The position numbers and the translations under genes were made by a program. A stretch of DNA of 64,000 nucleotides from Marsupella aquatica. Its lineage: Eukaryota; Plantae; Marchantiophyta. Under the pieces are notes generated by a model, which worked only from the letters and a program-made list of their open reading frames with translations, did not search any database and was not told the origin of the DNA. Location: NCBI GenBank assembly GCA_973895155.1, contig OZ316897.1:12957375-13021374 (forward strand), written 5' to 3'. Of the stretch, positions 1,149 to 37,706 are shown in pieces. Numbering within the stretch: position 1 is the first letter of the stretch; every line of letters starts with the position of its first letter.

Positions 1149-1172
1149 TACGGTGTTCGAAATGTTGCGGGG
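1149..1172 (+). repeat. Left terminal inverted repeat (24 bp), preceded by putative TSD GTCGAC 1143-1148
   Basis: 23/24 identity to the reverse complement of 25448-25471. Confidence 0.9.
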
Positions 1173-3090
1173 TGTTTTTTCCAGAAAAAGAGTCTAAAGA
1201 GAGAAAATATTCAATATTTCACAAGAAAAATACAAATACCCCAACTTATTTTGTAGGATACCCTAAAGTGTAATTTGCACGTGTTTGAATTAATTTGAAA
1301 TAATTTCTCACTCACTTCAGTAATTCAACAAAAACATTTTGAACATTATCATGTGATACATAAAATCATTCACATATGAATTATGTTTTTAAAATATTCT
1401 AACAAAATTCATATTTTTTCTCCACTTTTTGAAATTTAAAAACTATTTGGTCCTTCATTTTTGTATACAATATTTTGAAAATTTTCAATCCTTGAAATCA
1501 CAAGAATTCTACTCATGAGTGAAAACTCACAAAATATTTCCTACACCGAACAGAAAAAATTCAAAGAGCAAAACATAACGTTCAAGCAAGATTGAGAGTA
1601 AAACACATTTATATACCAAATCAATGAAGAAGCAAAAAAAGTTGACCAAAATAAATCATCTTGAAAAGTGTGAATGTTTTTTTTCTCTCCTTACATAGTT
1701 TTTTTTTCTCTGTACGGTTCCGTAAAGTGAAAATTTCTCCCCTTATCTACAAGCCAACCAGAAATGTCCAACTGTACTTTTTGTTGGCTCATAGACACTG
1801 GGAGAAAATTTGTACTTTACTCAGCCAATACTTTTAAGTTTCAAGGAAAGAAGAGGCCAACCTGAAGGATTAGGTTAGTCATCTGGGAAGAATGTTGTTA
1901 CTCCATATCTATGAGTTTCAACCATGGCCAAGTAAGTCTGCATGTTGGTTCAACTCCTCCATTGATGGATTTACTCTTCCCAATGGATTTGACTCGTTTA
2001 TCATTGGGACATGGGCCTTGATCACAAGAGACAAGCACCTCCTTCTTGCCTTCTATTTTTATGAAATTTATTAGTCCACTCTAATTGAGATAGGGAGTAT
2101 ATCATTCTGAGGTGGGTGGGATCCTCAAAGGACAAATCGTGCATCCCTCAATGGCAAAATTAGAGATGTTATGGAGCAACTAGAGGCCTGGTGTTGACTG
2201 CTGAACAAACAATTACCCCCAAATGTTGACATGCTTAAAGTTACTAATTATATAGGTCTACAAGTCCTTTATACCTCTACATCCTTCAATGCTTGTCTTT
2301 TGGATTGGAAAATATTGGGCATCCAAGCACAGGATAGTATTGGGCTTAAAAGTGTCTTTCTTGTTGAATCATGATGAAAATGTTTATGTTTGTGCATCCT
2401 GCAATGCTTGTCTTTTGGACAATATTGGCCTTAGAAGTGCCTTTCTTGTTGAATCATAATGAAACTGCAAGTACTCCTCAAGGTTGTAAGAGCTGACAGT
2501 TTATTTCTTTGCAGGTTCTACAAAAACACTCTTGTGCCACTACTCTCAATGGAACGTTAATATATTTACTAATGTGTCAAAAATATTTATAACTGACTCT
2601 TTGGTAGAAGTTTTGGGATTCAAAATGATCAGTTCCATCCAGGCTATGATAGAGACATTATTGTGAAGTTTGAACAGTCCAAAGTCTTTACCAACCATTA
2701 CACAAGATAGATTAATAAATAGCAATTTATGTCAACTTTGAAATGAACTCTCAATCACATTACTTAAAATCAAAGTACACTTTGTTGCCTCCAAACTCAA
2801 AGATAAGTAATTTTTGCCTTAAATACTAATTCTTGATGATTAGCAAGCTAGATAAAAAATAACTATTGGAGGCTATCCGGTATCCAACAATGTTTTCTTC
2901 TGTGATCCTTCCAAGCCATTGCATTTCTATCGTCTCTTGTAGAGTGTATAACCTGAAAATCCTGAAAAAACAACATGATATATTCACATTAATGATACTG
3001 AGAAAAAACAATACGAGTTTCCACAATACAATTAACACATGCAACAGTTGAAAAATTACCTTGTTGAATCTTATCAGAAGATAATAATCC

Positions 3091-6041
3091 TTATAACTTG
3101 CCGTAGGCGGTGTTGAAACTAGCCATGACCAACTTGGAGTGCATCACTTCCACATTTGGATATGCAGGAATATCAATTTGTTTAGAACAGGTGGATGCAA
3201 TAGGCAAAGAGCTCGAAGGTCGACTAGGGCTAAAATTCACATGACATATTGTACCTGCATTGTATTTCTCATCTGTAATAAACCTATATAATCTATAGGT
3301 TTCAACACCAGAAAATTGACCAATTGCTTCTTGAAATAAGTCTTTCAATGCTGGTGGAAAATCTATTGAATATCTGACCCTTGACAAAAACTCTCTATTT
3401 GTGATTCCTTGTTGCGCACTGAAAAATGCTTGCATGGCTTTCACAGAGACGTCTTTAAATGTACTTGTCAACACAAGCTTCTTTTCAGCCTCGTTAATGA
3501 AGGGAGATGCCATCACAGTCTTTGCCAATGAGAAGAATCCGTCATGAAGTAGTGCACCAACCATGCTGCAAGCTCCAAATAGAGTCTCATATATGATATC
3601 TGCATACAGTTTTGTAGTTGCTTTCTGAAATGCTTCAGTTGACCAGTTTGGGTCAAGTGTTACAACTCTGCAATAATATTCAGGCATTATATCCTCCATG
3701 CTGTCAATGAGACCCTCTCTCGATTCTTCAGGAGCATTAATCAAAGACTGCATGAAACCATACCTGCAATAAAAAATTAGTTTGATCATTACCTATAAAA
3801 TTAAGATCACAGTATAAAATGAGAAGACAATAATATCATAGAAATAATGTATAACAAAAAAGTGCACGGTTCCCAGTAGGTACATTTACATACCATGTTG
3901 GTCGAACAGCTCGAAAATCTTCTATATAAATTGATCGTTTTGTTTTTTCTTGTTGCACTTGCATGTAAATATCTTCACGGGAGGGACATTTACCCATGGC
4001 ATGAGCAATTGTGGCCATTGTGATTGGACGATGAACTTGTTTCTTTTTCAATATGAGAAGAAACATGAGTTGACCAACAAGTTGAACCTGATGGAATATG
4101 ACAAGTAAAAACCTAGTTAAAATCAATAACATTAAAAAAATTGAAGCAATGATATAAACCACTGAAACAGTCTGGAACACTACAATTGAATAATATTTTA
4201 AAAACTTTACATTGTTATTTATGACTTACATCTTTCTTGGAGATTTCTGTAAACTGTTTTTTGGAATTAAGATGATGAAGCCCGCTACATCCCTCTGTGA
4301 AAACTGCATGGAATTCCTGCATTGCATAAATATGTTAATCATGATTCAAGGTTGAATTGCATGACTAGTCCCAGGACTAGTCTTGAACAAAATTATTGAT
4401 TCATGATCAAGAAAACTTACTGCACTTCCACTAAACAGAGTCTTCCAAGCCCCTGTCAACAATCGACTTGTGACACCCCCTGCATCTACAGTTTCAGATT
4501 CCTCCAGTGTTACTTCTCCACTATGTGTTGTGTAGATTAACTTTGCTGCAAAATCTCCAAATATCTCTTGTCTTCTCAAGGCTTCTTGGCACATCTTTCG
4601 AATAGCAGTTAACTCATCACCGTCATAAAACTGCACAGACAAAATAAAGCTATTTAGATGTATAAACTTAAATGCAAAATGACATTAAATACAACAAGGC
4701 TATAGATAAGTATGAACATTTTCAAGACTGGGTTTCTTTTGTTTCTACATTACCTGAATTCGAATTTGTGGAACCTGCCTATAGAGTTTCCGAAAGTGAG
4801 AAAGTCCAATGTCAGAAATCTGATGGACCCTTAACAAGTATTTTGTCCTTTCAGTTTCTTTTTTGGCTTCAATGTACATATTTTCACAACTTGTAAGCGT
4901 CGGTTCTTCAAGCTGACATTTTCCAATCCATTCAATGTATTCATCGCGCAGAGAGATAATGCGGGCTTCTGAAAATTTCCCTTTCCCGTATGATGGAGTA
5001 AGCAAATAATCTCTGAAATAATGCTCAACAATCCACAGTATGTTGTTAAATTCAACAATGAAAACTATTCACTTTAAATTTACAAAAATCATAATTTTAA
5101 TGGAATGCATTCAGCTCACTGCATCTGATGAAAATGAACACTTAAATAAACATGTCAACCATTAATTACCTGAAGATTTGTAATGATCTGTCCAAATTGT
5201 TTTGAACAAACTCAGGAACAAGATCGGGTACGAGTTTTTGCAATTGTTCCCACATGTGCCACCTTGGAATGGCTGCTGCCTCAAAATAGTATCCAAAGTC
5301 ATACTTGGTATACGAACTTAGGCCTTCTAAACCATTTAACACTGGTGTAACAAAATCTTCCAGCATTGCATCTGATAATCCCAATTTTGCTTCTCTTCGA
5401 TGTTGAAGGAATTCCAGATCTGCACAAGCAACTGTCGCATCCATTTTATTGCGTTCCTCTACTAAAACGGCATCAAAATTTTCCCAAAAGATTGCCATGG
5501 CTTGATTTGGTGCTTGATCCACAGGCAACTTTATGCCTTTATCCAATTTTTGAAGCCGTTCTTGTGCTGCACAATACGCATCTAGCAGGGCTGACGTCTC
5601 TGTCTCACTTGTTATAAGATCGTCCTCAAATCGGTCATTCTCGGGTGTGCCTGTACAATCACAAAATAGTTCTAAAAATATTCAACCATCCACTCAAGCC
5701 TACATATTATAAGAATCAATCCAAACCCGAATCAAAATCCTTAACTCTAAATCCTGAACCCTAATCAACACACAATTCTGACATTTTCACTTACCTCTTT
5801 GTAGTAATCTTGATTGTCTTTCAATAACCTCTTCATTTTCCAATATAATGGGACTATGAACAGTCCCTACAAGGCTTACTTCATTCTCATGTCTTGAAGA
5901 TCCAAAGACTAGGGCTCCTTGTGCAGGTATAGCTTCGTTCAAAACACCTCTGGTTCTTGCAGTTTGAAATGAATGAGCTCGTAAAGGTAAAGTTGGCAGT
6001 AATAATGCACCTGTATCATGTTTCACAATTACCCAACACAT
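3091..6041 (-). CDS. Divergent HECT-domain E3 ubiquitin ligase (spliced; transposon cargo)
   Basis: Phase-compatible GT-AG exon chain: ~6041/6010-5795, 5650-5170, 5012-4754, 4630-4421, 4316-4230, 4087-3894, 3763-3091. The spliced product shows HECT landmarks in order: EESETVDAGGVTSRLLTGAWKTLF (cf. GEEGxDxGGxxREWF), VQLVGQLMFLL, LYRFIT (cf. LLxFVTG) and C-terminal LPIASTCSKQIDIPAYPNVEVMHSKLVMA..YG (cf. LPxAHTCFNxLDLPxY..LxxKLxxAI..FG). The catalytic Cys is retained. The 5' start is uncertain. Confidence 0.8.
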
Positions 6042-7898
6042 TAGGGTTGGATTGTCAGATTGCTTTCACTCACATAGCCACTCTGTATCCTTTTTAATAC
6101 ATATTATGATTTCATGGCAGCATTGTTAACCTACTATCGCCTTATTGTAGACATCTTGAAAAGCCTTACATACTACAGTAAAGCATCTCAAAGCTTGGTA
6201 TCCAGATTGAGCTTCGGCCATAACTGTAACTCAAGACTTAGATATATAGAAACTTTACAAAAGTTGTATGAGGTCAGGCAAGGGAATCCACATGAAGAGA
6301 CCAGAGCATCTAATGGAGAGCAATAGAGCAATAATTAGCACGCTGAGAAAAGCAAAATAATGTCTTGAGAATTCCTTATACAAAAGTTGACCAAAAGACC
6401 AATGACTTAGTATGCCAATGATTTACCATTTAATTACTCTACTCTCCTAAATGCAGGTGTACATTATGATCAGAACTGTGATGAGTGCAATATGATTTCA
6501 TTTTACTCAGCAGAACTAAAGAATGTTTTTGCTTCAAAGCTTTGGCTGGCTGCACACAAGCCTATGATGCTAGACACTCCATTTGTTCCTCATACTAATC
6601 AGCGTTGATGGAAAATACCATGGCTGCTACGGTTTGAAGTGTGTACTAAGGGTCTTCCTCTTGAGCTAAGAAAACATGTACAAACTTGCTTCAACACGCT
6701 TGCAATAAAAAAACTCATTGGTCGGTAGTCGATCTTGAAGTGGCCAAACTTTCAAGATTCCCCAATGCTTTCATCAGTTAATTGTTTTGTTGCACTAAAA
6801 TGCAAAAGAAGGAAACACCTGAATCAGGATTGGGGCTCATCCGGGGGCTCATCTTGCATACCACAAGTAAGCTTTGGAGCATCAATCACCCCACCTGTCT
6901 CTGCTCCATATCTACTGGAGTTTGTTTGGAATCATGTCACCTATAACTCCAGGGTCATAGGAAGTGCTTTTCTCAAAATGGCCAACAACCAACCTTGATC
7001 AGCAGGGTCAGTGGATGTCAATTCGAGGGCTGCGTCCTGGGGCCATGATTACCTGGTAATGAGCATCAAGTATTCCACTTGCAGTGATTCCATCACAGTC
7101 ACTAGGAGTTTGGTTCCAGTAAGGCTCATTCTGGAGTCAGGGCTGTAAGTGAGAGTAATATGGAGAGAAGAGGGCCATTGACCTGTTGGAGTGGATTGGA
7201 TTGATAGGGTCATTCCACTGTAGTTTCAAAGAAAAAGCATCTCCAAAAATCTATTGGCAAGGTGTTGACAGATAAACAAAAGGACTGCCCACAACAAGGC
7301 AGACAAACAGAACACCACCAGAAGCGCACAACAAAAACCATGTTGGTCAAAAATTGAAAGGATGCGGTACAAAATGCACAACCAAGAAGAGCAATCATTT
7401 GCAGCCCATAGCCTCATTCAGAACATGCTTTCATAGATCTTACATATGCATGCTGTGCAATACTAATTTCATACGTACACCTACAAACTAACCCCCACCC
7501 ATGCTAACATGTAAGAAATTGAATAATTATTAAACTAAAGTGATCTATGGCCAAGGAAACTCAAAGGATGCACGTACTTGAGTCACCATGGGGTGAAGAC
7601 GAGCTGTCATTGGGCTGGGTTTGAAACTCAGAAGTCGAAGGGTTTCCCAATTGAGGTGACGAGCTCGTTAATGGAGATGACAAATTAGAGGATCTTCTTG
7701 ACAGATTTTGCGGGGCTTCAAACCAGAACAATGCAATAAGCAATTAGATACCTAATTCGATCAATTACATAGAAGCTACACTATATAATCCATAAAGCTT
7801 CATGGTGTATTTTTCACATCAATGGAGCTAGAAATGATTTACCTGTTACTCAATATTACTTGTGCATCGATCAAGACAAATGAAGTTGATATCCTTAC

Positions 7899-9085
7899 CT
7901 GTCAAAGTTATTGTGGGGTCATGCAAGTTTTCTGTCTCCTCAATCCCTTCAGACTCAGAAGCTGCAAAGCTCGAGTTTGAGCTCTCTCTTTGAGTGTTAG
8001 AATTCCATGACTGTGAAGGACTTTGGGCATGTTCTGTTTCATTTTCAAATGCCCGACGATGCTCTGTCGTTGGAGAATCTTCTGAATAGACAAAAGTTTC
8101 AATTAATATGCAAATCATATCCAAAGACTTGCTGGGAAAGAGCAGAAAAATGTCATAATCTAAGAATCTAGTAACAATGATGACAAAAATGTTTGCTTGC
8201 TTTACCTGGACGTGCAGTCGAGTGACCATGGATATTTCGTCTGGTATCTCGTTTACGTCGACGTGTTCCTTGTGAAGGCACAATAATTGTTGCACCTGAA
8301 CAACCAGCCGCCTCAACATGGTAATGTCTTATTTGTTGTGGCGTCATTTGACAAGAGGGGTCTGGAATGTATACTACTTTATCAAACCGAGACACGTTTC
8401 TCCATTTGGTGTCCCCCGATAGAAAATATGAATCTAGTGTTGCACCACCTAGTTTGTCCAGGTCGTCTCTGTGTTGCCCAACATTTGTCATTCTCAAAAA
8501 GCATCCTGATATGTCAGCGTAACCAGTATTTTGGGCCCATTCTTGAGATGCCACAATTTCCCGAATATGCCATTGAGCAGTATTTTCCTGGAATTGACCT
8601 CCATCATAGACACCACCCCAAGGCGTTGACCCAGGTAGACTAACATACATTGGAGGCCTGAATTTTTTCACTCTTCGCATGTAGCAACTCTGATTGCCTG
8701 TGTCCACTTGTTGTGCCTCCCAAATTTGTTGAGGACAATATATAGCACGACTCACTGGTTTATCATAATTCCTTCGATTGCAAATTATTGGAGGAGGTCT
8801 TGCAATCATCTGTCTCCTTCCTCTGTTTGCCGCACCTCCACCTCTGTTTCCTCCACCTCCACGTCTATTTGATCCACGTCCAGATTCTCCTTCAGGTTGA
8901 TAATTGTATTGGTGATACGAGGCTGGGAATGTTGGAAATTCATATAGTGGAAGTGTCACTGGCTCAGTAGTTTCCTGAGGACCCGATTGTGTACTAGTTC
9001 CTAGTGGGATCATCCTCGAATTTCTATTGTATCCTTGGACAGGGTTTCTCTGACGAGGATCTCGACTATCAGTAGGTTCATCCAT
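7899..9085 (-). CDS. Two spliced exons (9085-8206, 8081-7899) of an unknown protein with a Gly/Arg-rich N-terminus; possibly the 5' part of the HECT gene
   Basis: Long ORF from ATG 9085 (MDEPTDSRDP...GRGSNRRGGGGNRGGGAANRGRR..., then a globular-looking segment ending KVVYIPD). Donor CCAG|GTAAAG at 8206/8205 is in phase with the acceptor at 8081; next donor ACAG|GTAAGG at 7899. The connection across 6050-7750 is not resolved. Confidence 0.55.
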
Positions 9086-10249
9086 ATTGCAATTCTGAAT
9101 GCAACGCAAGATTGAAACCCAAGATCCAAATGGCCAAGAACCTGAGGCTCTGCTCTAGTTCATTACTACTTTTGCGAACAGAGTGCAAAGTGTCAAGCTC
9201 AAAGGTAGATATCACTGAGTAGTACAAATTATCTTATATTATGAGCAGAAAGTAATAGATGTTGTTAGAGTACAGCCGCCATTTCAAGAATTTGGTGAAC
9301 ATTAGTATCACATTAACTTCCAGTACATATCATATTTGTTAACAATCATCTCATCATAATGAAGACTAGCTACCGCAACTCTTTTTAGCCCTCGGATACA
9401 TAATTGCCAAAAGCGGGTTACCGTATTTCTTATTTTCTTTAGAAAGACACTGCTACGCATGTAAGATGATTGAACTATTGTAAACTATAGTATTGTAGCT
9501 AGTAGTACACTCCAAACTATTCAAAGTTAGAGACATGCATGAAAGAAATAAGTATTTTAAAATTGTGTCGATTATTAAGGTCCAGTTAGAAACATCCAAA
9601 ATTTATAATTAACAAGAACTTTACATGTCACCAAACAATTATGTTTGTTGGATTTGACATGTCAATGGTGAAGAGTGGGCATCGTGACTTATTCCCCAGG
9701 TGAAGGTTGGAAAAACTAGTGTGAAGAATATGATTGGTTCATGTGCACGAATGATACATATTTTTTGGTGCCAAATTCCAATAGAAAGTTCGATAGTAAA
9801 CGAGGCAATAGCTATTACAAAAAAATCCCTACCATTGATATCTATTGATGAATGGTCAGTAATTTGTAACATTGGTTAGTATGCATGAATTTAATTGTAA
9901 AAAACAAACATAATGTGGTAGCTTGTGTGACAGTTATAACGCATGTGGGATTCATGCCATTTGCCACTTGCAAAATGACAGTTAATGCTAGTGACAAATT
10001 GGGTTGAGCCTCTTATGGGATTCAGGGAGACGCTTCAATGATTTGTCATTCAATGCACCTCGATTCTCCCCCACATCGGCAAATACAGAATGCTCTCTCC
10101 CCATTTTTGGGTCCCACTTCAGTTTCAGGCCAGCCCCATTTTTGGGTCCCCGTTCAGTCTTGAGAAGGGCACACCGGCACAGATTCTGGAGGAGAATCTA
10201 ATGCTCGATTGTTTTAACTAGGCTATAATAACTGAATGTAGTCGGGTGG

Positions 10250-10600
10250 CCAAGGGAGGGAGGCGCAGGGCTGGCTGTGGCAGGGTCCGTGGCAAGTGGT
10301 GAGGCAGGCAAGGGCGCTGGGGCTCGCCGTGGCAGAAAGGAAGGAGGGCGGCATGTGGGCTGGCCGGGGCCATCGTGAGTGGTGAGGCAGGCGAGGGCGC
10401 TGGGGCTCGCCGTGGCAGAAAGGAAGGAGGGCGGCGTGCGGGCTGGCCGTGGCAGGAAGGAGGGAGGTAGCCGGGTGGCCGAGGGAGGGAGGGACTCAGG
10501 CGGCCAAGGGAGAGGGGCAGTCGTGCAGCCAAGGAGGAAGGGCTGGCCGTGGCAGGAAGGAGGGAGGAAGGTAGTCACGGCCGAGGGAGGGAGAGACTCA
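10250..10600 (+). repeat. GC/purine-rich degenerate short tandem repeat (GGCTGGCCGTGGCAGGAAGGAGGGAG-like units)
   Basis: Several imperfect copies, e.g. near 10328, 10410, 10441 and 10541. Confidence 0.75.
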
Positions 10601-10624
10601 ACCGGGAGTCGGTAGTCCCGCGCA

Positions 10625-13185
10625 TTCAGGGAGACGAGTCCCTGAATTGTCATTCAATGCACCTCGATTCTCCCCCATAGCCCACCGGAATACTCTCTCC
10701 ATTGTTGTGTCTCGCTTTCAAGCCAACCCCATTTTTGGGTCCCAGTTCAGTTTTGAGGAAGGCACAGATTTTTGATTGAGGAGTTCTAATGTTTGATGGT
10801 TTTAACTTATTCACAAATAATGTAAAACTATAATATTAATTTTAAAAATATCAATATATTTAATAAAAATATATAATTATTATAAAATATTAAATGGTAA
10901 TGAGCATGGAGAATTGACGCATAGAACTAGTGTGTGACCTAGTCGTATTGGAGGTCAGTTGAGACTAAGACGTGGCGTGTTCAAGGCACACGATGGGCAA
11001 CTTTTCTTTTCTTTGATTGAGGGCATGGAAAGGAATGAACTTTGGAGGGGGCGGGGGTGTCTCATTGTATTTGAAAATGAAAATGGTAAATGAGATATAT
11101 ATGGTTCAAGTAGTTTGGAGATAGCAAAAATAACAAAGGAAACACCCATGAGAGCCAGGGAGATAAATTAACCTCTTTTGTTAATTTCCTATACCTGCCC
11201 ATTGTTGTGAGGTGCCAATCATGTTCCTGGTGGGTAGTTGCTTTCAGTTTTAGGAAGAATCCAACAAAAGAGGTTAGAAGTCAAAAGGCAAACAATATTA
11301 GAGGTGGTGTTGACAAGAGAAGAAAAGCCTTGTGCAACAAGCTGAGAAACCAGTAAGACAAACGAAAGCCCCTATGAAAAAGGCACAAAACCAACCCAAC
11401 AGAAGGCCCCTATGAAGTCCAAAAGTGTGTGGTAGAGAAGACAACAGGGCCAGGAGTGGTAAGTGTGCTCCAATTGACAGGTTTTGAAAGTTTGCAAGGA
11501 ATTGGTGCAAGCATGGGTCTGAATTCTTTGAGTGTCTTGACAAATGTGTCAAGCACAACACCTTTGGTACACTTGTTTTCCAGGGTAGCCAACTTAGACT
11601 ATTTCCAACCTTGTATGTAGAAAAGATATGTGATTGAGTGATTAATTGTAGGGCGGTAGGCTGCCGTTGGCTTCTAGGTTTTCTATTGATTTGAAAACAA
11701 ATTTCATGAATAAAGTTTTGTTTCTTATACAATAAGATGTGTGCTTACCATAAATGGTTTAGGAGATAAATGGTTTTTTATGTGATCATGTCTCCTCAAC
11801 TTTTTTGTTGCTGCTATATGGCGCATCCTTGGTTCATATCCCCAAGTCCAATTTTTTTGGACATTATTTACGGACCCCCATGGGAAGTTCCTTCCAAAAT
11901 CCCTGGCACCATGTTGAGCCACATCAGCAGGAATGGCCACAAATAAGAAAATCCAGATGTGAAAGAAGAACAAAACCTTATGGTTCGTGTTTGTGACAAG
12001 GCAAAAAAAAACTGTCAATCCTAGTAACTGTAAAAATGAGAAAAAAAACTGAAGAATAAAGTTGAAACAAACAAAGAATGAGGTAAAGAGTACTTAACAC
12101 TTGGAAGTTCTAGAATTGATATATCAGTGTTTTGCATTAAATGTTAGATTTTTTTCTAATTTTAAAAGATTTTTAAATAAACACTGCTAGAGGAAGTAGA
12201 AACAAACTGTTGGGCTTCCAAGATTTTTTTATAAGTATTTGGTGAAGTAACAAATTGTTGGGTTTCCAAAGTTTTGTAATAAATATTTGATAAAGTAAAA
12301 ACAAACTGTTGGGTTTCCAAGCACTGGTAACCGCAGTAAGTTGTAGATGGTACGTTTTAGATGACTTGAGATGACAAAGGGAATGGCTTGATGACTTGAG
12401 ATAACATGACAAAGCTAATGGCTACCCTTATACTCTTAGATCTGGCAATTTACCCCTCACCCAAGCCAGTTTTTGGTGAATTTAGTAGGAATATTAAATC
12501 CCTCCTGCAAGTTACAAACAAATCCTGCTACTTACATTATTTGGCAATTCCTCCTACTAATAGATGGAGTAGACAAATGTCTTGCAGATTGGGAAACCCT
12601 TAAACCACAACTCCAGATATATATACCTGTAGCTCTCATTTCCACTATGAATGAAGGGATGGGCAAGAGTGTTCTTTCATTGATCCAATTTGTTGAATGT
12701 ATTCAAGTTTATCTGTCTCAGGGGGTCCTCATACTAATTTAATTTTTATGCCTGGCTCTGATGGGTGTCTCCTTTGTTATTTTTTCTATCTCCAAATTAC
12801 TTGAACCCCTCATATATATCTCATTTGCCATTTCCATTTTCAAATACAATTAGACACCCCCGCCCCCTCTAACGTTCATTCTTTTCCATGCCCTCAATCA
12901 AAGGAAAGAAAAGTTGCCTGTCATGTGCCTTGAACACGTCACCCCCTAGTCTCAACTGAGCTTCAATACCACTAGGTCACACACTAGTTCTATGCGTCAA
13001 TTCTCCATGCTCATTACCATTGAATATTTTAGAATTATTTTATATTTTATCTTAAAAAATATATTGATATTTTTAAAATTGATATTATAGTTTTATGTCA
13101 TTTTTGAATAAGTTAAAAACGTCAAGCATTAGAACTCCTCAAAAATCTGTGCCCTCCTCAAAACTGAAGGGGGACCCAAAAATGT
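10625..13185. mobile_element. Nested non-autonomous foldback/long-TIR (possibly Mutator-like) element
   Basis: ~440-bp arms ~10730-11170 and ~12740-13185 are inverted copies (e.g. ATGGTAATGAGCATGGAGAATTGACGCATAGAACTAGTGTGTGACCTAG vs its reverse complement at ~12972-13020). Related terminal sequence is also at ~10020-10220 and ~44893-45140. No TSD identified. Confidence 0.65.
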
Positions 13186-15374
13186 GGGGATTGGGACACA
13201 GGGTACATCTGGGAAATTGATAAATTCAGGCAAACATGAAGACAAACATTGATTTTTGACATTGGCAAGGGACTTTGTAGCTGAGGTGAACAGTTCTGTT
13301 GACAGACATGACATGTCTTATGCACAAAATTCAATGATAAACACCAGTTTGTCTCTAAATGTCAATGGTTTATAGTCTGAAAATCAACTTACACCTGAGC
13401 TTCAGAATATCATAACGAAATATCGAGTGAAGTTTTAAAGGAGTTGAGTTGGCCTTGACATTGATGCTACTGTTGAAGTGGCTCCTGATATTGGTGACCC
13501 AGGTGAAGAGCCAGCTCAACCCTCTTCTCTTGGGGCTGTACAATGTCTTGCAAGGATGAGACACATGGGACAGATTGTAGGAGAGTGAAAAAAATGTTAG
13601 TTTGTAGCTTATGTGAGACAACATCTACTATTCATAGTTGATTAAAGTGAATCAAAGAGATCTTGTTTGCTCAATGTGTTTCAAGAGTACCCCAAACTGC
13701 AAATGTGAGGAGGAGTTATAGATTTCTGAAGTTTACTCAATATTTGAATAGTATATGAAAGGAGTTATAAGGTTCTGAAGTTTTCTCAATGCTTGAATGA
13801 GTAGTAAGTTTTGTAAATTGTAATCAAATATTGTGCACATTTTTAGCGTTTTTATAAGCAAATTTTAACTATTGTCCATTCTTTGTTTTTAACTTTAAGT
13901 ATGTGTGACACTATTTGACTTGTGACCACAATTAGTGTCATATTATATTAGTGTCACACACCCTAATTACCGTCACTTACCTCAAATATAACCTCACAGT
14001 AATTAGAGTCTGTGAGACTACATACTGTAAAGAGTGTAGTTACCCTTGGAAATATTATAATGGATTAACTAGTAAAACATGCAAGCTGGGAAGCAAGGAA
14101 GCAATGGGGAACGATTGGCTAAAATGACACTAAGAGAAAATATATCTTTTTGAATTATAAGTGACCTGGCAATACTTCAGTTGTTAGTGGCCTATAGGTG
14201 TCATGCTAATTACAAGAGATTTAATCCCAAGATTTTTATAGATTACATAAAGACATGTTAGTGACTAGTCAAAAACTGAATCATGTAAATGTTAGTGACT
14301 AGTCAAAAAGTCACTCATGTGACCATGGTAGGTGAGTCCTAAGGAAGTCATATAAATAGCAGAAATAGACTTTAGTTGCAAGACATCTGTATACCTTACA
14401 CCCATTTCATGCAAACTAATTTAGACTACACATTTTTTCATGTACACTTGTGAAATAGTGTTTGAATTATTTGTATACCAACACTATATCTAATCACAAC
14501 ATTTAGTGTTATATCCATCGCTTTTCTAGGTCCACAGGCATAACAAAGTTACAACTTGAGAATTCCTCCAAGCACTATTTTTCCTCCTTCAACTTCTTCC
14601 CTCCTTTTGTATTTCAAACTTGTCTTTCTCAATGAATGTATTGCTCACTATGTTAGGGTACAAGGCCTTGGGGACAGTTTCATTGTTTTTTCACCAGAGC
14701 TAATTAATCTACCAGCCATGTAACATCCTAAGGCTAGATAGTGTACCAGGGCTCAAAAGGAAAGTCTAGAATTATTTCATGGTCGCTCGTTTATTCAGAA
14801 TTTATGCAGGTCTTTAGTGGAGTCTTCTCTATCTAATCACAGTTCACGTGCTTTTGATTCAAAGAAAGGTCCATCCAAAATGTTCCTTTCTTAATGCCCT
14901 TTGCAAGTTTTCCATTTGTATTTTTCAGGACATTCTTGGAGCATAATGCCCACCACAAGATTCGGATCATCTCTTGAGTAAGATTGTCCATTACTTTCAC
15001 TAAATCAAGAAAAAATAAAATCTCTCAAGCCTTTCAATATAATAAGGTTTTATTTGCCAAACCATTAGGGAAACAACCCCTCCAAATGCAAGCTAAAGCT
15101 CTCCTTTTTTGGTCATGTTCCATAATGCCAACTAAACATGACTTTACTACATACTTCTAAAGTCTATTTTTTGCCTTCAATATTGTGTTTGGTTTTTCAT
15201 GGTTTACTCTATTTTAATGATCCATGCTCCATATTTTTCAATATGGATGCTAAGGTCAGTTGTTCTTGAATATTTTCCAGAAGAGTTGGCATTATTTGCT
15301 CAATAATCTTGGAAACTTTTAGTCAATTTTATCAGTGCACATGTAGTCGTATAAAATTCAGGAGTCGTAGTGTT

Positions 15375-17060
15375 TCTTAAGTCAAATTTTGATTCTAAGC
15401 TTGGTTTCCCTGAAACTTTGCCAACATAGTCGTGGCTCTATCTTCCAAAATCTGGCAAAGTTTGAGTGCATTCCATGTAGCAAATGTTGCCCTACAAAAT
15501 TTGAGCAACTCGCAGCTTTTTATAAGTCAAATTTTGTCGATTTCATATCTCTTGATCATTTTGTTTTTTCAGTTTTGATTCTGAGCTCGGTTTTCCCTGA
15601 AACTTTGCCAGCACACTTGTGACTCTTTCTTCTAAAATCTGGCAAAGTTTGAGTGCATTCTGTGCAGCAAATGTTGCCCTACGAAATTCGAGCAACTCGC
15701 AGCTTTTTTTAGGTCAAATTTTATCGAGTTTGTATCTCTTGATCGTTTTGTTTTTTCAGTTTCAATTCTGAGCTCGGTTTTCCCTGAAACTTTGCCAGCA
15801 CGGTCGTGACTCTTTCTTCTAAAATCTGGCAAAGTTTGAGTGCATTCTGTGCAGCAAATGTTGCCCTACGAAATTCGAGCAACTCGCAGCTTTTTTTAGG
15901 TCAAATTTTATCGAGTTTGTATCTCTTGATCGTTTTGTTTTTTCAGTTTCAATTCTGAGCTCGGTTTTCCCTGAAACTTTGCCAGCACGGTCGTGACTCT
16001 TTCTTCTAAAATCTGGCAAAGTTTGAGTGCATTATGTGCAGCAAATGTTGCCCTATGAAATTCGAGCAACTCGCAGCTTTTTTTAGGTCAAATTTTATCG
16101 AGTTTGTATCTCTTGATCATTTTGTTTTTTCAGTTTCGATTCTGAGCTCGGTTTTCCCTGAAACTTTGCCAGCACGGTCGTGACTCTTTCTTCTAAAATC
16201 TGGCAAAGTTTGAGTGCATTCTGTGCAGCAAATGTTGCCCTATGAAATTCGAGCAACTCGCAGCTTGTTTTAGGTCAAATTTTATCGAGTTCGTATCTCT
16301 TGATTGTTTTGTTTTTTCAGTTTCGATTCTGAGCTTGGTTTTCCCTGAAACTTTGCCAGCACGGTCGTGACTCTTTCTTCTAAGATCTAGCAAAGTTTGA
16401 GTGCATTCTGTGCAGCAAATGTTGCCCTACAGAATTCGAGCAACTCGCAGCTTGTTTTAGGTCAAATTTTATCGAGTTCGTATCTCTTGATTGTTTTGTT
16501 TTTTCAGTTTCGATTCTGAGCTTGGTTTTCCCTGAAACTTTGCCAGCACGGTCGTGACTCTTTCTTCTAAGATCTAGCAAAGTTTGAGTGCATTCTGTGC
16601 AGCAAATGTTGCCCTACAAAATTTGAGCAACTCGCAGCTTTTCTTAGGTCAAATTTTATCAAGTTTGTATCTCTTGATCATTTTTTTTCTTTAGTTTTGA
16701 TTCTGAGCTCGGTTTTCCCTGAAACTTTGCCAGCACGGTTGTGACTCTTTCTTCTAAGATCTGGCAAAGTTTGAGTGCATTCTGTGCAGCAAATGTTGCC
16801 CTACAAAATTTGAGCAACTCGCAGCTTTTCTTAGGTCAAATTTTATCAAGTTCGTATCTCTTGATCATTTTTTTTCTTTAGTTTTGATTCTGAGCTCGGT
16901 TTTCCCTGAAACTTTGCCAGCACGGTTGTGACTCTTTCTTCTAAGATCTGGCAAAGTTTGAGTGCATTCTGTGCAGCAAATGTTGCCCTACAAAATTTGA
17001 GCAACTCGCAGCTTTTTTTAGGTGTCATTTTTTGGCAAAGTTTGAGTGCATTTCATCATG
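15375..17060. repeat. 187-bp tandem (satellite-like) array, ~9 units
   Basis: Unit starts at 15632, 15819, 16006, 16193, 16380, 16567 (exact 187-bp period), with near-identical central copies. A 12-bp inverted pair AAACTTTGCCAG / CTGGCAAAGTTT spans each unit junction. Confidence 0.95.
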
Positions 17061-17627: not shown

Positions 17628-19322
17628 ATGGAAGGACTGAAAGACAAAATAAAAAAAAGAAGAAGTGAGACTCCAATTCTAAAGGTAATATATTTTCTCA
17701 CTACTAATATACTTTGAGATCAGAAAATGTTTGGAATATATTTGAAACCAGTACACATTTTGTGAGGCCAATTCATTGTCAGGTGAATATATTGATAGTT
17801 GACCTACTGGGGGGGCGTGACTTCCCGTATTGTGGAAGAAACCTCATTATCCGGTGGCCGATACAGTCTATATTCTATGGCTTTGTTTTGTGTCCGAAAT
17901 GTTTAGCATATTTGATACTCATCATAGGTTTATATTTGTTATTTTTACTGCAAATTTAAGATGAAACTCTTTTTTCTTTTATAGGGCAAAAAAACAGTGA
18001 AGGTATCTTCCGAGAGGTTCTCTGCAGCATCTCTTTATTTCTGTGAAATCATCAAGCTTGCTCAAAAAGCTGGTGGGAAAGTAGGACATTTTCATACAAA
18101 AATTCTATGTAAGTGGTTGTTGGGCGAATACTATCTTTTCGAATATGGAGTACAGATATTATCTGAGGGAAACCTAAAAGGAAATCAGTCAACCTTTTTT
18201 GATGGTTTTCACAGTTTAAGAAGAGATGGAAGTTGGATTGCTTGGTTTGATGAAAAAGAATGGAGTAGCATCAATCATATGATAATGAATCGTTACAATC
18301 TATCATCTGTTGGGAGAGGCTTATCAGATCGGATACAGAAGTTCCGAACTGATCCAGACATGTATCTAAGAAGTAAGAAAGATCATTACCAGAAATTTGG
18401 AAAATCCCGTATAAAGTTTACAAATTTCACCAAGAAATCTTCCGATTTTGTTGGTAGATTTTCCTCCAACTATTTGATTGAGGAAGATTTGGAAACACCT
18501 TGGGCAAATCGAATTATAGTCTGGAGACCGATGATCGAGCCTTTCTACAAGATGAATATTTCATCAAGAGTGGAGATTTGGATGGATGGTGATGAAATTG
18601 GAGGTCGGATGAAAGGAGGTGTTCCAGAGAAAGATAGATCTTTTGTTCAGTTGTTTGTGGAAGAAATATGGAATGATAAATATATAGTGAAGAGGTCAGA
18701 TACACGATCTGCATTGAAAAATGTCATGAGGGCAATTGGCCCATTAGTGAACTGGCGAGAAGGGAAAGGTAATCATTTTGTGAGCTTCTACCGTAACAAG
18801 TTGAAGATATCACAAACACAGGATCCTACTGTGGTTCAGTTAGAATTGCTCTATGAGCAATGTGCACATCGATTACTGTTTGAAATTATTTTTGTTCTTT
18901 TCTGTGAACACTTATGGCCAGTGGTGGAGAGTTTTATTGAGATTATGCCTCCAATGATGGAACTTAGCAGTGAGCTTTTGGCTTGTTTTTCAAAGCCTGA
19001 ACTCATGAAAAAAGCCATTCATGCATATCCTTTATTCATCACAAAGGACTATTGCAATGAAGTTCATACAGATGTAGATGAAAGCGAGTTTACAATGTTC
19101 ATGGCATGTAATCCATCGAATGAAAGTAGAGGTGGAGATTTAGTGATGCTAAAATATGGAATTAAAATTCCAATTTTAGATGGAGATTTGTTTTTTGTTC
19201 GGGGTCAAGATCCTCATGCTACATCGTATAGAAGTCCACCAATGAAACCAGTATATGTAGTTGGAATTGCCGTAAACCAAAAACTTGGCAATGCTTATGA
19301 GTTTCGCGGTGAAAGTAATTAA
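17628..19322 (+). CDS. TET/JBP-like Fe(II)-dependent dioxygenase (double-stranded beta-helix), ~464 aa, transposon cargo
   Basis: Exon 17628-17684 (MEGLKDKIKKRRSETPILK, basic NLS-like) splices in phase 0 to 17985-19322. The C-terminal ITKDYCNEVHTDVDE...GGDLVMLKYGIKIPILDGDLFFVRGQDPHATS...VVGIAVNQK carries the HxD...H iron triad. HATS resembles the HATT of animal TETs. Confidence 0.7.
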
Positions 19323-19751
19323 ATAAATTTTGTGATACACTGAGATTAGCTATGCGGGTTTTCTTTTGGTCTATTTTTTGTTTATTATTATGGTGGATTT
19401 GGTTATAATAGTGTACTATATATCCTGATGCTAAAGTTTTTAGTTTATCTTCTTGTTATAGAATTTTTGTTCATTGGTGCTTGTGGCTGTAATATGACTT
19501 GTGAGTTTTTAATAGGTTCAAGAAAGCCAATGAAAATTTTAAAAATGTCATCTGCTTCCAAATTGGGAATCATCAACAATTTTTTATGAACAGACAACGT
19601 TGGGGCCAAGCTTACAAGAGCAATAGTCAATTGCTGTAGAAAACAAAAATTGAATGACTACTGTTATTTGTATATGGTTGCAGGTGTTAAAATTGTTAGT
19701 TGATGAAACTGTGGAGTATAATCTATACTCAACCCACGCTGGACAATCAAT

Positions 19752-21423
19752 ATGAATGATCCAGATTTTCAACAGTATACAGATGTAAAAAGAGCTCTCG
19801 ACCTAGGGTACACTATGAATGAATGTGCAGATGCATTTGGTGTACATAGAGTGACTCTATGGAAATGCCTCAAAAACTTTGATATTGAGCATAGAATATA
19901 TCCCCGATATACTTTAGAAGATGTTTGCTCTCTTATTACCGAGATTGTACCAATCCATGGATATGCTGAAGATTGGGGAATACGTTTCGTTAGAGCACGT
20001 TTAAAAAGGGCTGGTTATAAAATCTCACTAGCACTTGTCAGAAATGCTTTGGACACATTACTTCCTGGTGTACTTGAAGGAAGGGCACGAAGATGCATCA
20101 TAAGGAGATTTTATGATGTAATTGAGCCAATGCATCTGTGGCATATGGATTGTAAGTAGAACATCTATGTCTCTTCTAAATTTTTCCTGCTTTTATATTG
20201 AAGTTAACTTTAGAATAGATCCTCAATACTAATAGATTGTTTGGAAATTGAATGCAGCGTATGATAAATTGACGCAATGGGGATTCAGAATTCATGGTGC
20301 AATTGATGGGGCTACACACTTTGTTCCATGGATGCATGTGGCATTGAACAAGAAAGCGCATACTCTATATGTGGGATATAAGACAACCATACTTAGATTT
20401 GGTCATCCATTGATGATTCGTTCTGATTATGCAACAGAGCATGTTTTGGTAAGAAGAAACCTTGAAAGAGCAAGACCAAGTACAAATTGTTTTTGCATGG
20501 GGTCTTCTGTTCATAATCAGGTAATGTTTCTGATTAACAAGAACATATAGAGTGGTTCATTTCATATTTCATGTCATCGATTGCAGCTTGGAAATTCTGT
20601 AAATTTGAAATCAATTTTGTGCAGGTACTTATATTTGTATCCTATCATGTATGTTTTGGCAGAGAATTGAGGCATTTTGGAACTACATGAAACAAAAAGG
20701 AACTAATCACTTCAAGAAGACTTTATATGACTTATCATGTGTGGAAGGATTTTTACAAATTGATATCCCACTTCATAGATATTGTATGGTTACTGTGATT
20801 CTTCCTTTACTACAAGAGGCTGTAAATGATGTGGTTTTAACATGGAATGCACATACTGTGAGAGCTGTGCGGATTGGAGGTATGTTGAGACCATCACATA
20901 TTCCAGAACTTGCATTTCAATCACGAGAAAGAGAAGCTAGAATTATTCAGCCTCCACCTTATGCCGAAGAAGCTCAGGTGGATATCGAACAAGAAGATGA
21001 CATCATCGATCCAATGGGAATTGATTATTGGAATCACAACAATGATCGTAGAAACTTTGAAGATCGCATAAACGATTTGAATGATGAAGTAAGCATTGTT
21101 TTGTATTATTATTAATGTTCATGTGAATTATGAAATGATGATGTAAGAAATACTTTTGTTTATATGCCCTTATTCATGTTTTATTTCTTTTGCAGAATCT
21201 ACAATACATTCGTGATATTGCATATGAAAGGAACCAAGTGACAGTCACAACTGCAAAAGACAAATTGCGAATGCATCTTCTTCTTTCTATAGAGTGTCAA
21301 AATAGTATGGATGCTTCATTGGACTTGGAGGACTATGTACAAAATGAATTAGGGCTACCTAATTTGTCAGATGGTAGATTATGGGCCTTAAGATCCTTGC
21401 AACAAACATTACAGATTATATGA
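19752..21423 (+). CDS. Integrase-fold DDE transposase (IS3EU-type), 438 aa, 4 exons
   Basis: Exons 19752-20151, 20258-20520, 20663-21088 and 21196-21423 join in frame (1317 nt, all GT-AG). N-terminal HTH (GYTMNECADAFGVHRVTLWKCL). Catalytic motifs WHMDSYDKL..WGFRIHGAIDG, PLMIRSD and GSSVHNQRIEAFW; later WNAH. Confidence 0.9.
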
Positions 21424-21574
21424 CTGACACAATATGTGAGGTAATGTAATAGTTTACTAGTGACACAAACACTTCTTCTTGAGGCTTTAGCAATATTCGA
21501 AGAAATTATTTTCTAGTCTATTGGCTTGAGAGATACTTGTTCATGTTTTGAGCCCATAATTTTGCTCTCATCCT

Positions 21575-24520
21575 AGTATTTAACCTAGCTTTGGACCCTT
21601 GTCTGAAAATGCCAATAATTAAATCCTTGATTTTTTTTCATAAATTTGCATCCAAGACTAAGCATGCCTGGTATTTTGATTCCAAATCCACTCTCACAAT
21701 GTTGGTTTGAAATTTCCTTGGCCAGTTGTGGTGGGGCAAGTTGATTCAAGTCCTTTGTATTTTGTTATAATGGTCCTCCTATTTACCCTAACTTTGGACC
21801 CTAACTAGCTTGTCTCAAAAAAATGCCAAGAACAAATCCTCAATATTTTGTTGTGTATTTATAGCATAGACTGAGCCCAATATTGTGATTCAAAATCCAC
21901 TTACACTTTGAAGGTTGAATCTTTCCTAATGGTGGTGGTGGAGCAAGTTCGTGATCTACCTTTGTATTTTTTGTCATGGTAGTCCCATTTACCCTACCTT
22001 TGGACCCTTGACTTGGACAATGTCAAGAAATAAATCTTCATTAATGTAATGTGTATTTACACCCTAGACTAAGCCCAGGACCAAGCTTGACCTGGTGATT
22101 CCAACTTTGCTCTCACTTTGTGGGTTCCATCTTTCTTTGCTCACTTGTTTGGTGGAGCTAGTTTCTTTATCGTCCTAAGTTGTATTTTTGTTATTTACTA
22201 TAAGTGACCCTAGCTTTAGACCCAACCTAGCTTGTCTGAAGAAACCAGATCCTCATAACTTGTTTATGTTGTACACCCTCCATTACAATGATTGTTGTCA
22301 TTGGACAAGCTCTCACTTTGTTGGTTTCACCTTTTTTAAGTCACTTCTGTAGTGGAGCAAGAGTATTCAAGTCATTTCTATATTTTTCTCTAGGAGAGCT
22401 TATTGTCCTTTAGGTCCTTGTCTCAAAATGCCAAGCGTCAAATCCTCATAATTTTGTCACAAGTTCACACCCTGGACTAAGCATGGTATTTTCATTCATA
22501 ATCTGCCTGTCACATTGCTGGTTTGACATTTTCTTGGTCAGTTGTGTGGTGGATCAAGTTTGTTCTCATCCTTTGTATTTTGGATATGATCTTCTCATTT
22601 ACCCTACCTTTAGACCTTGATTGAGCAAAATCCCAAGATACAAATCCCCATAATTTTGTTGAGTATTTACACCCTTAGTAGACTGAGCCTGGCTTGGCTC
22701 ATTCCAAATCCACTCTCACTTTGCTGGTTCAGCATTTTCTTGGCCAGTTATGTGGTGCACCAAGTAGGTCCAAGTCCTTTGTATACTTGTCATGGTCTTC
22801 CCATTTAACCCTAACTTTGACCGTTATTTTAAGAAAATGCCAAGACACAAATCCTCAAAATTTATTTGTGCTTTTCACCATATGCTCAGACTAATTATAT
22901 TGTGATCAGATATCTGCTCACTTTGTTGGTTTCATTTTTCCTTAGCCATTTGTGTGAGGGAGCATGTTTGTTCAACTCCTTTGTAATTTGGTTATGATGC
23001 TCTCATTTACCCTAGCTTTGGAACCTTGTTTCAAGTAAATGTCAAATACAAATCCACCTAATTTCTCCATTTATTTACACCCTTGATTGAGCCTGGTCCT
23101 GTGATTTCAAATCCACTCTCATTTTGCTGGTTGCAGATTTTCTTGCTAAGTCATGGAATGGAGTGAGTTTGTTCAAGTCCTTGTTAATTGTGTTATAGTT
23201 CTCCTATAATTTACCCTATTTGACTTTGGACTCTTGTCAGATTAGGGAAATGCCAAAACACAAATGTTCATTATTTGTTTTTGTATTTAAACCTTAGGCT
23301 GAGCCTCATATTGTGAATCAAAATTGTTGATTTTCATTTTTGTTCTTTAGTCAATTGTGTGGGGGAACAAGTTTGTTCTTATCCTTTGTATTATTTTTCA
23401 TTTTGATCTTCACATTTACCCTAGCTTTGGAGCCTTGTTAGAAATGTCAAGATACAAATTCACATAATTTCTCCATTTATTTACACCTTTGATTGAATCT
23501 GGTTTGGTGATCTCAAACCCACTTTTATTTTGCTGGTTGCACATTTTCTTGGGCAGTTGTGGGATGGAGCTCGCTTATTTAAGTCCTTGGTATTTGTGTT
23601 ATGGTTCTCCCATTTACCCTACTTGACTTTGGGCCTTTGTCATAGAAAAATGCCAAGAAACAAATGCTCATGGTTTTTTTTTTGCATTTACACCTCATGC
23701 TGAGCCTCATAATGTGAATCAAAATCAGTTCTCCCTTCGTTGATTTCATTTTTCCTTAGTTAGCTATGTGAGGGAGCAAGTTTGTTCACGTTCTTTGTAT
23801 TTTGGTAATGATCCTTCCGTTTACCCCACTTAACTTTGGAGCCTTGTCTAAGAAAAATGCCAAGAAACAAATTCACATGATTTATTTGTGTATTTACCCC
23901 TCAGGCTAAGCCTGATATTGTGATTTGAAATGTGCTCTCACTTTATTGGTTTCATTTTTCATAAGTCAGTTGTGTAGGGGAGAAAGTCATTTGTATTTTG
24001 GTTAATATGAGCTTCCCATTTACCTTAGCTTTGGATCTTTCTTTCAAAAAAATGTCAAGAAGCAAATTAACATAACTTTCTACACCCTAGATTTAGTGGG
24101 CCTTGGTGATTCCAAATTTGCTCCCACTTTGCTGTCAGTTTGACATTTCTTTGGCCAATTGTGTGGTGGTGCAGGTCAATTCAAGTCCTTTGCATTTTTG
24201 TTGTGCTCTTCCCATTTACCCTAGCTGTAGACCATTGTCTTAATAAAATGCTGAGAAACAAATCGTCATATTTTCTTTGTGTATTTACACCATAGAGCGA
24301 TACCCAAATGTGTTCAAGTTGTTTGTATTTCTAAACAGTGTTGGTATTTACTCTAGTCTGGACCCCTTTGAAAGAAATTGCCAAATAATAAATGCTGATA
24401 GTTTCTTTGTGTATTTTTTAAGAGACACAGCATGACCGACCTTGTGATCTCAAATTGGTCCTGACTTTGGTGGTTCTACCTTTCCTTGAACTGTTGTTGT
24501 TGTGGAGCAAGTATGTTGAA
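21575..24520. repeat. Old degenerate ~200-bp tandem array, ~14-15 units
   Basis: The anchor CATTTACCCTA(G/A)CTTTGGA..TTGT..AAAATGCCAAG recurs near 21580, 21782, 21988, 22205, 22598, 22804, 23006, 23211, 23416, 23613, 23820, 24019 and 24215. Confidence 0.85.
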
Positions 24521-25447
24521 GCCTTAGTTACGCCTTTTTTTCTATGGTGATGGTTAGTCATAAAATGTGGTTAAGGTTAATGTTTACAAAACTAGCTTAT
24601 TTATCAATTAGTTATGAATTAAAGTGTCAATGGACCAGGGTAGTATGAACAAAGTATCACGAGGGTTTGATGTGAAAGGGGTTCCAAGAAACACAGATAG
24701 ATAGCGATAGACCACATTATCCTTACCAGAATAAAAGTTATTTTTTTTAATAAAATGAGTTAAGTTCATATAGTCATCTGGGCAGTTTGTTAAGCATTTA
24801 AGTGCATGAGTTTTAATTAGTTCCTATTTATTCCCTATTTAGAAATTGGATAATTAGTTTTTCAATGTGTACAGTAGTTTGTTCAACGAATCACTCCCCC
24901 CCCCCCCAAAAAAAAAAACTCCCGCTTGAAAACTATTGCATGTTTCTCTCTTGAGAATGAAAACCATTTTTTAGTTCTCTAAAATAAAATAAAACCTTGG
25001 TGGTGGTGTATATTTTGTGTGTTATTTTTTCTGGATGTGCATTGTTTTTTGGGGTGACTTTTTCGGGAGAAGGTATTTTTTCCGTGGAATTTGTTCTCCC
25101 TTCAAAATGTTCCATTTTTGTTATTCCCCTAACTATCATTTGGAGTAAAACTTTTTACTTTCTCCAATATCTCAAAATTAATTTTCTCTGTAGAATTTTT
25201 TGAATTTTTTGCTCTTTATTGAATGCTTCAAATATTTCTCACCTTATAATATTTCCAATTTTTTCCGATGTTGTGTTTGAGAAGAAAAATTTTAATTACA
25301 CTATTTAGTGACCCATTTGATTATTTTTACGCATTACTAGTTATGTAATTCTGTTTTTCTCCCTTTATCTTTCAGTTTCGAATACTCTCTTTTCAGACTC
25401 TTTTCCGCAGATATTTTCTCTCGGTTCAACTTTTTAGCCGATTCTCT

Positions 25448-25471
25448 CCCCGCAACATTTCAAACACCGTA
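25448..25471 (-). repeat. Right terminal inverted repeat (24 bp), followed by putative TSD GTCGAC 25472-25477
   Basis: 23/24 identity to 1149-1172 in inverted orientation. Confidence 0.9.
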
Positions 25472-37620: not shown

Positions 37621-37706
37621 TCTTTATGAGCCTCAATCTTGTCTTTCGTCCTGAAACCAAAGTAACAAAGCACCCACTAGTCCACCTCCTATAGGAGCAC
37701 AACATC

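Follow-up and report, generated by a model that had tools for sequence, protein, structure and literature searches.

We report here the analysis of a 24-kb DNA transposon of Marsupella aquatica (Marchantiophyta), located in a stretch of 64,000 nucleotides of contig OZ316897.1 (assembly GCA_973895155.1, positions 12,957,375 to 13,021,374 of the forward strand) that was analysed as a whole and is referred to below as the window. The explanation that best accounts for the data, and that we consider probable, is that an element of the IS3EU/GingerRoot lineage inserted at a GTCGAC site and carries a TET-like dioxygenase gene and a HECT gene, for which an anti-silencing role is proposed. That positions 1149-25471 form one mobile unit of this lineage is the firmer part of the explanation, and we hold it with high confidence. 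IS3EU and GingerRoot constitute a single lineage that is restricted, among plants, to bryophytes and lycophytes (PMC6839031, PMC10045372); the superfamily was to be expected in this host, since it has been reported from bryophytes (PMC6839031). A previous sequence-only reading of the same DNA had described 24-bp terminal inverted repeats (TIRs) starting with TACGG, GTCGAC on both flanks, an intact spliced DDE transposase, a tandem upstream HxD...H dioxygenase gene, a divergently oriented HECT gene with its catalytic Cys and two internal satellite arrays, and all of these features were recovered in the present analysis.

The element is delimited by the following features (positions are those of the window).

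1149-25471 (24,323 bp): whole element, a single copy of a DNA transposon
1143-1148 (no strand): left GTCGAC, putative 6-bp target-site duplication, palindromic and identical to 25472-25477
1149-1172 (plus strand): left TIR, begins with TACGG; contigs of public runs start at 1169-1176
25448-25471 (minus strand): right TIR, ends with CCGTA, 23/24 match to the left repeat
25472-25477 (no strand): right copy of GTCGAC

The 24-bp inverted ends (TACGG...CCGTA), which agree at 23/24 positions, are unique in the window: a search allowing up to three mismatches (<=3) returned just these two sites in 64 kb, 0.00 being expected in shuffles, and within 27 kb no other inverted pair at long range exceeded 90%. 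Beyond 24 bp, both ends have in common only a short subterminal motif, GAGAGAAAATAT. Two traits of IS3EU/GingerRoot elements, i.e. TA..TA termini and a 6-bp flanking duplication, were thus observed, on one copy and with a palindromic hexamer. The palindrome and the reading of one copy make the argument from a target-site duplication (TSD) weaker, and they count against our delimitation to the extent that the same letters can be read as a 30-bp inverted repeat (29/30) instead of a TSD. We prefer to read GTCGAC in this sequence as a 6-bp duplication rather than as a TIR extension, because (i) IS3EU/GingerRoot elements always have TA..TA ends and 6-bp duplications (PMC10045372, PMC6839031); (ii) fungal TET-bearing IS3EU elements end exactly in TAYGG..CCRTA (PMC12730594); and (iii) a GC-rich hexamer suits the GC-rich target preference of GingerRoot (PMC6839031).

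The transposase gene was modelled on the plus strand as follows.

19752-20151 (plus strand): exon 1, helix-turn-helix-like N-terminus, first catalytic D (LWHMD), GTAAGT donor
20258-20520 (plus strand): exon 2, second catalytic D (IRSDYATE); Pfam rva_4 2.7e-14
20663-21115 (plus strand): exon 3, catalytic E (NQ|RIEAFW), AG acceptor; Pfam rva_4 2.7e-7

The integrase core model rva_4 was matched by two successive open reading frames (ORFs), 20248-20550 (2.7e-14, profile positions 17-104) and 20651-21115 (2.7e-7, profile positions 103-170), each exceeding the 26-bit cut-off, as befits an rve/IS3-type DDE transposase. Since these profile positions abut, the profile continues over the proposed exon 2/exon 3 junction. 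The D-57-D-34-E spacing and the GT..AG introns were read from the letters across the exons, and a possible additional exon lies near 21190-21423. With all three catalytic residues present and at least three exons predicted, the catalytic core of the transposase looks intact.

Public sequencing data were then considered. Words sampled from the TET/transposase region were recovered, at 13-69%, in six public runs carrying three organism labels. Contigs of four runs were compared with positions 1-6000 of the window. Interior contigs from the three organism labels were 97.6-99.9% identical to the window, and two contigs of run X5 were continuous over 1703-6000, thereby connecting subterminal sequence with the HECT exons. 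Contigs started inside the inverted end, at 1169 (run X2) or 1176 (runs X3 and X5), and none of those listed spans 1148/1149. Word depth was approximately 200-290 in the interior vs 33-74 in the flank for X3, approximately 13 vs 1-6 for X5 and 240-900 vs 2.5-54 for X2. Because interior depth is several-fold flank depth and contigs break at the inverted end, the runs give a consistent sign of what looks like a multi-copy family with its repeat boundary at the inverted end. Contig depth was even over 1169-6000 and fell in the flank; by the tool's own warning, contig depth is not copy number, which tells against the mobile-unit reading, as does the fact that one copy was read directly, a second copy with a different duplication or an empty site not being among the data read.

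In one of the organisms (organism B), the flank (143-1048) was approximately 86% like the window, and the interior (1169-6000) was 98-99% alike. The flank contigs of runs X3 and X5 stop matching at 1048 and go on with 971 letters unlike those of the window, so that the locus is different in that organism. Provided that these flank contigs do not represent paralogous repeats, this fits an element that was active after the organisms diverged, or that was transferred from one to the other.

It could be argued that the two ends belong to different or truncated elements, the genes between them having been assembled by chance where transposons abound. Other elements do crowd this region (one of them nested at 10096-13190, another, of 13 kb, adjoining at 25614-38705), and both the single copy read directly and the palindromic hexamer, which weakens the duplication argument, leave room for such an assembly. 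Against it stand the pairing of the ends, unique in the window and the sole one of its kind in 27 kb, the family-specific TACGG that they carry and the depth profile, even from 1169 to 6000 and lower in the flank. We regard a chance assembly as extremely unlikely, and a single mobile unit is retained in what follows.

Upstream of the transposase and on the same strand lies the dioxygenase gene, for which two exons were predicted.

17628-17684 (plus strand): TET-like exon 1 (predicted), ATG and 18 codons, 57 nt, encoding a basic stretch resembling a nuclear localisation signal (KIKKRR), then a GT donor
17985-19322 (plus strand): TET-like exon 2, preceded by a polypyrimidine tract and an AG acceptor (17983-17984); dioxygenase, H357/D359/H407 (ORF numbering)

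The underlying ORF (17997-19322, 441 codons) is located 430 bp upstream of the transposase and displays the motifs HTD...PHAT. The two exons are in phase, from which we infer a predicted two-exon gene of 464 codons.

Homologues of the product were searched for by two routes. A word-based search returned one relative, P0001 (479 amino acids), 53% identical end to end, and an exhaustive profile search returned 35 relatives, mostly fragments. Ten TET relatives were looked up: nine are unnamed proteins of raw assemblies (Logan, ENA or NCBI) and one, annotated as hypothetical, comes from the amoebozoan Planoprotostelium fungivorum. Scans of metagenome contigs for the PLFITKDYCN motif, using a protein pattern and a degenerate DNA pattern, gave no match.

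For fold prediction, only the ORF 17997-19319 was used as input, spliced models being searched exon by exon. A first structure model, built on a 2-sequence alignment, reached a predicted local distance difference test score (pLDDT) of 31 and was discarded. The model built on a 28-sequence alignment reached a pLDDT of 83.4 and a predicted template modelling score (pTM) of 0.85. When it was compared with the PDB using Foldseek, ranks 1 to 26 were all occupied by TET-family chains, with values of 6.7e-8 for CcTet, 5.7e-6 for NgTET1, 6.3e-6 for CMD1 and 2.6e-5 for TET2. VIA-align, applied independently of Foldseek to 48,161 chains, placed the same four proteins first (Z of 15.9 for TET2, 15.6 for CMD1, 14.1 for NgTET1 and 13.8 for CcTet), the remaining 2-oxoglutarate oxygenases being found at Z <=12.4, below all four TETs. 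At the sequence level, the family profile matched CMD1 best among solved structures (E 0.005), over a region spanning HxD and the second His (HxD...HGT). The profile alignment pairs H357/D359/H407 with H345/D347/H397 of CMD1 (PMC7854593). Within the family, the iron triad is conserved at H357 (25/25), D359 (24/25) and H407 (21/22), as are D361 (25/25), R233 (13/13) and, to a lesser degree, Y420 (15/20). At R412, five residues after the second His, 14/20 family sequences have R and 2/20 have K.

Several observations speak against an assignment to the TET/JBP family. The Pfam scan left the dioxygenase ORF of the window unrecognised, with no match to Tet_JBP (PF12851) or 2OG-FeII_Oxy_6 (PF20515). 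Six of the 28 relatives match PF20515 (best 1.4e-3) and three of the 28 match PF12851 (best 2.9e-4), all individually seen scores being below the gathering score in both cases. The Arg that usually binds the C5 carboxylate of 2-oxoglutarate should stand 10-15 residues beyond the second His, and no Arg occurs at this spacing. Judged from the predicted fold, the product of the gene is nevertheless very likely a dioxygenase of the TET/JBP family, and we conclude that it represents a very divergent TET/JBP clade missed by curated models.

The third gene, probably of several exons, is encoded on the opposite strand, towards the left end of the element.

3091-3789 (minus strand): final HECT exon, second half of the HECT domain; catalytic Cys 32 residues before the stop
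4346-4642 (minus strand): probable upstream HECT exon with the N-lobe start, motif VDAGGVTSRLL (tentative, motif found by eye)
5166-9109 (minus strand): further ORFs, candidate N-terminal HECT exons; no Pfam matches

ORF 3091-3789 was recognised by Pfam HECT (PF00632) at 5.9e-9, with 36.4 bits for a cut-off of 23.9, over profile positions 162-299 of 306. Canonical HECT ligases have their catalytic Cys approximately 32-36 residues from the C-terminus and an aromatic residue at -4; here, the Cys is found in LPIASTCSKQ, likewise with an aromatic residue at -4. In the alignment to the HECT domain of HUWE1, LPIASTCSKQIDIPAYP lies over LPSAHTCFNQLDLPAYE, Cys on Cys, and the domain is very divergent. 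The HECT protein looks catalytically competent. The front of the domain probably sits in ORF 4346-4642, an assignment made from the motif and kept tentative because this ORF gave no Pfam or PDB sequence match as a HECT N-lobe.

Among the more distal ORFs, that of 313 amino acids at 8168-9109 (minus strand) holds an Arg/Gly-rich stretch, RGSNRRGGGGNRGGGAANRGRR; it gave no Pfam match and no homologue, and it may be an N-terminal HECT exon, a separate gene or noise. A resemblance of this ORF to small viral coat proteins (suggested by the protein Atlas with a score of 0.91 and low recognition) was distrusted as weak.

A relative of the HECT protein, P0041 (198 amino acids), was 56% identical without a gap, keeps the Cys and reached 43.4 bits with Pfam HECT. 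Like P0001 for the TET-like protein (53%), it retains an open frame (479 codons for P0001, 198 for P0041) together with the catalytic residues. Since neutral decay at 53-56% identity would not keep frames open, selection appears to have acted on both TET and HECT. As far as can be judged from these protein comparisons, the two relatives have diverged to a similar extent, as would be expected if both genes had descended together within a related element. The HECT gene is likely a conserved part of the element family.

These homologues also bear on the possibility that both genes are passively captured passengers, decaying and of no benefit to the element. Fragments of host genes have often been picked up by GingerRoot elements (PMC6839031). 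A passenger origin would also accommodate the strong divergence of the HECT domain and the fact that no run is recorded as RNA. Such an origin sits poorly with long frames and catalytic residues kept at 53-56% identity, with a TET gene that is complete as a predicted two-exon frame, with the lack of any annotated plant host gene as donor among the ten TET relatives looked up, and with a layout that mirrors that of fungal TET-bearing IS3EU families (PMC12730594). We therefore consider passengers to be a very unlikely explanation and continue with genes maintained by the element.

The activity of the TET-like enzyme is the part of the proposal that we advance most cautiously. As has been argued for the fungal elements, it is possible, and we hold it only tentatively, that the enzyme acts on 5-methylcytosine (5mC) to the benefit of the element. 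The CpG observed/expected ratio is 0.39 within the element vs 0.54-0.70 elsewhere in the window, which suggests that methylation-driven decay has not spared the family. This depletion, the reverse of what lasting self-demethylation predicts, counts against an activity on 5mC, and none of the six public runs being recorded as RNA, which leaves the gene models sequence-based, counts against the proposal as a whole. Of the earlier proposal of a large cargo-bearing IS3EU element that may oxidise 5mC on itself and ubiquitinate host silencing factors, the first part is borne out by transposase, TET/JBP-like and HECT genes lying inside the ends; the two activities stay conjectural, and lasting self-demethylation is at odds with a CpG ratio of 0.39.

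CMD1 converts 5mC into 5-glyceryl-methylcytosine with vitamin C, and JBP enzymes hydroxylate thymine. The element could accordingly be real and its TET-like enzyme write another, possibly hypermodified base in the manner of CMD1 or JBP, or use another substrate, the benefit being marking or transcription control rather than removal of 5mC. Among solved structures, CMD1 is matched best at the level of sequence, and it is tied with TET2 structurally; the canonical Arg is replaced, in conservation, by R412 at +5; and the strong CpG depletion indicates that methylation-driven decay continued. The same possibility has been raised for divergent fungal types (Kojima 2025, PMC12730594). However, the position of Trp358 of CMD1, a residue that blocks 2-oxoglutarate (PDB 7CY4-7CY8, PMC7854593), has a non-Trp consensus in the profile alignment (M369 of the window protein by our count), and the element showed neither a glycosyltransferase gene nor any other gene for a modifying enzyme. 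The fold and the triad are compatible with demethylation as well as with hypermodification; weighing these points, we find hypermodification rather unlikely.

In the mechanism that we propose, in which the enzyme acts on 5mC, the transposase would move the whole unit by cut-and-paste via the 24-bp ends. The basic N-terminus, which resembles a nuclear localisation signal, would take the TET-like enzyme into the nucleus, where modification of 5mC would weaken the silencing that methylation imposes on the element, an effect also proposed for the fungal counterparts. The HECT protein would fill the slot occupied by an alpha-kinase in fungi, and would most likely be a second counter-defence or regulatory factor ubiquitinating some host protein.

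The remainder of the element consists of repeats and of a nested insertion.

15387-17023 (no strand): young 187-bp tandem array, 8.8 units, 95% matches, approximately 600 bp upstream of the TET gene
21557-24500 (no strand): old degenerate array of approximately 205-bp units, about 14 copies, 60-89% identity; missed by Tandem Repeats Finder (TRF)
10096-13190 (no strand): nested foldback-like insertion, inverted arms of approximately 450 bp

The two arrays differ in CpG observed/expected ratio, i.e. 0.11 in the old 205-bp array vs 0.78 in the young 187-bp array. The arms of the foldback insertion are 86-92% alike and flank a 1.6-kb core; its terminal motif, CCCCATTTTTGGGTCCC, occurs in extra partial copies at 10096-10173, and positions 10295-10453 are GC-rich and contain an 83-bp repeat.

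To the right of the element, a second large element (25614-38705, 13 kb) has inverted ends of approximately 390 bp that are 97% alike (25614-26000 vs 38705-38322) and that contain 154-bp tandem repeats. It encloses a Harbinger/PIF-type DDE_Tnp_4 ORF (27689-28924, 4.6e-27) and also holds a Myb/SANT ORF (29612-30661, minus strand). Across the window, Rfam gave no match, and the proteins recognised were those of transposons, with no host gene informative about the organism. In the left flank, the stretches 35-81 and 1048-1089 have a very high word depth (thousands at 1-200; 600-1000 around 1048-1089 in X3), with many contigs diverging on either side; they are pieces of high-copy repeats, one of them approximately 60 bp from the element.

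Land plants are taken to remove 5mC solely by glycosylases of the DME/ROS1 type. The broadest claim compatible with our data is that of a land-plant lineage in which working TET/JBP enzymes were introduced and are kept by IS3EU/GingerRoot elements, and in which a HECT ligase of the same elements eliminates a silencing protein of the host; taken in full, we judge it doubtful. If it were true, oxidised or hypermodified cytosines would be made in bryophyte nuclei, and the element would hold a two-pronged, self-encoded anti-silencing kit undescribed in any organism. Short of this, an intact and selected TET-family gene on a recently active plant transposon suggests that oxidised or hypermodified cytosine may occur in the genomes of some bryophytes. 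Fungi and plants would then have reached the same answer in the contest of transposons with methylation, either independently or by transfer from one to the other. The presence of HECT in the place of the fungal alpha-kinase suggests a slot for interchangeable host-manipulating enzymes. As its TET and transposase frames are unbroken, the copy of the window is a natural template for expression and enzyme assays.

Compared with known systems, the element is closest in design to the TET-bearing IS3EU families described by Kojima (2025) in rust fungi and Tuber, e.g. IS3EU-7_PSt (PMC12730594). These have TAYGG..CCRTA ends, 6-bp duplications and a third gene in reverse orientation followed by TET and transposase genes; their coding regions are intact and an anti-silencing role has been proposed for them, the function being untested there (PMC12730594). 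The element of the window shares with them the ends, the 6-bp duplication, the position of the TET gene between the transposase and an opposite third gene and, as in some fungal families, a TET gene co-oriented with the transposase. It differs in its land-plant host, in its much larger size, with arrays and a nested insertion, in its TIRs (24 bp vs >30 bp in fungi), in a TET clade lying below the Pfam curated cut-offs and in its third gene, which encodes a HECT protein vs an alpha-kinase in fungi. The ORFs of the element that were scanned, exon by exon and hence with the risk of missing a split domain, contained neither an alpha-kinase nor a PHD gene.

The sequence-only reading had assigned IS3EU mainly to animals and fungi, and TET/JBP cargo to other transposon families. 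The first statement has to be widened, as the lineage is also reported from bryophytes and lycophytes (PMC6839031, PMC10045372); the second holds as regards the existence of transposon-borne fungal TETs, but IS3EU itself bears TET in fungi (PMC12730594). With the GingerRoot elements of Selaginella lepidophylla and bryophytes, our element has in common an integrase-related DDE transposase, GC-rich 6-bp duplications, TA..TA ends, and the carriage of foreign sequence in elements of up to approximately 13 kb (PMC6839031, PMC10045372). Unlike it, GingerRoot elements have TIRs of 100-150 bp, and their cargo consists of host gene fragments, not of complete TET-like or HECT genes.

Three other systems offer more distant parallels. 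CMD1 of Chlamydomonas reinhardtii is a TET homologue of the green lineage, matched here at a profile E of 0.005 and a structural Z of 15.6; it is, in contrast, a host gene using vitamin C, with an identity of approximately 10-14% and a Trp where the window family has none (Trp358). CcTet of Coprinopsis cinerea, for which 5mC oxidation has been shown experimentally and which also acts on N6-methyladenine (6mA), belongs to the transposon-associated TETs of fungi (Kyakuja/KDZ) and was the top Foldseek match (6.7e-8), but these TETs are borne by another transposon superfamily and identity is approximately 9%. The anti-silencing factors of the VANDAL (MuDR) elements of Arabidopsis provide a functional analogy only, i.e. 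a plant DNA transposon with its own counter-silencing protein, the protein and the mechanism being unrelated and involving no enzymatic base oxidation.

The literature searched contained no paper that assigns a TET/JBP gene to any land plant and no report of this gene combination from plants, in agreement with the earlier remark that it was not recognised from plants. The occurrence of the superfamily in bryophytes (PMC6839031) and the TET-bearing design in fungi (PMC12730594) are already known; what is new here is the land-plant host, the very divergent TET clade and the replacement of the fungal alpha-kinase by HECT.

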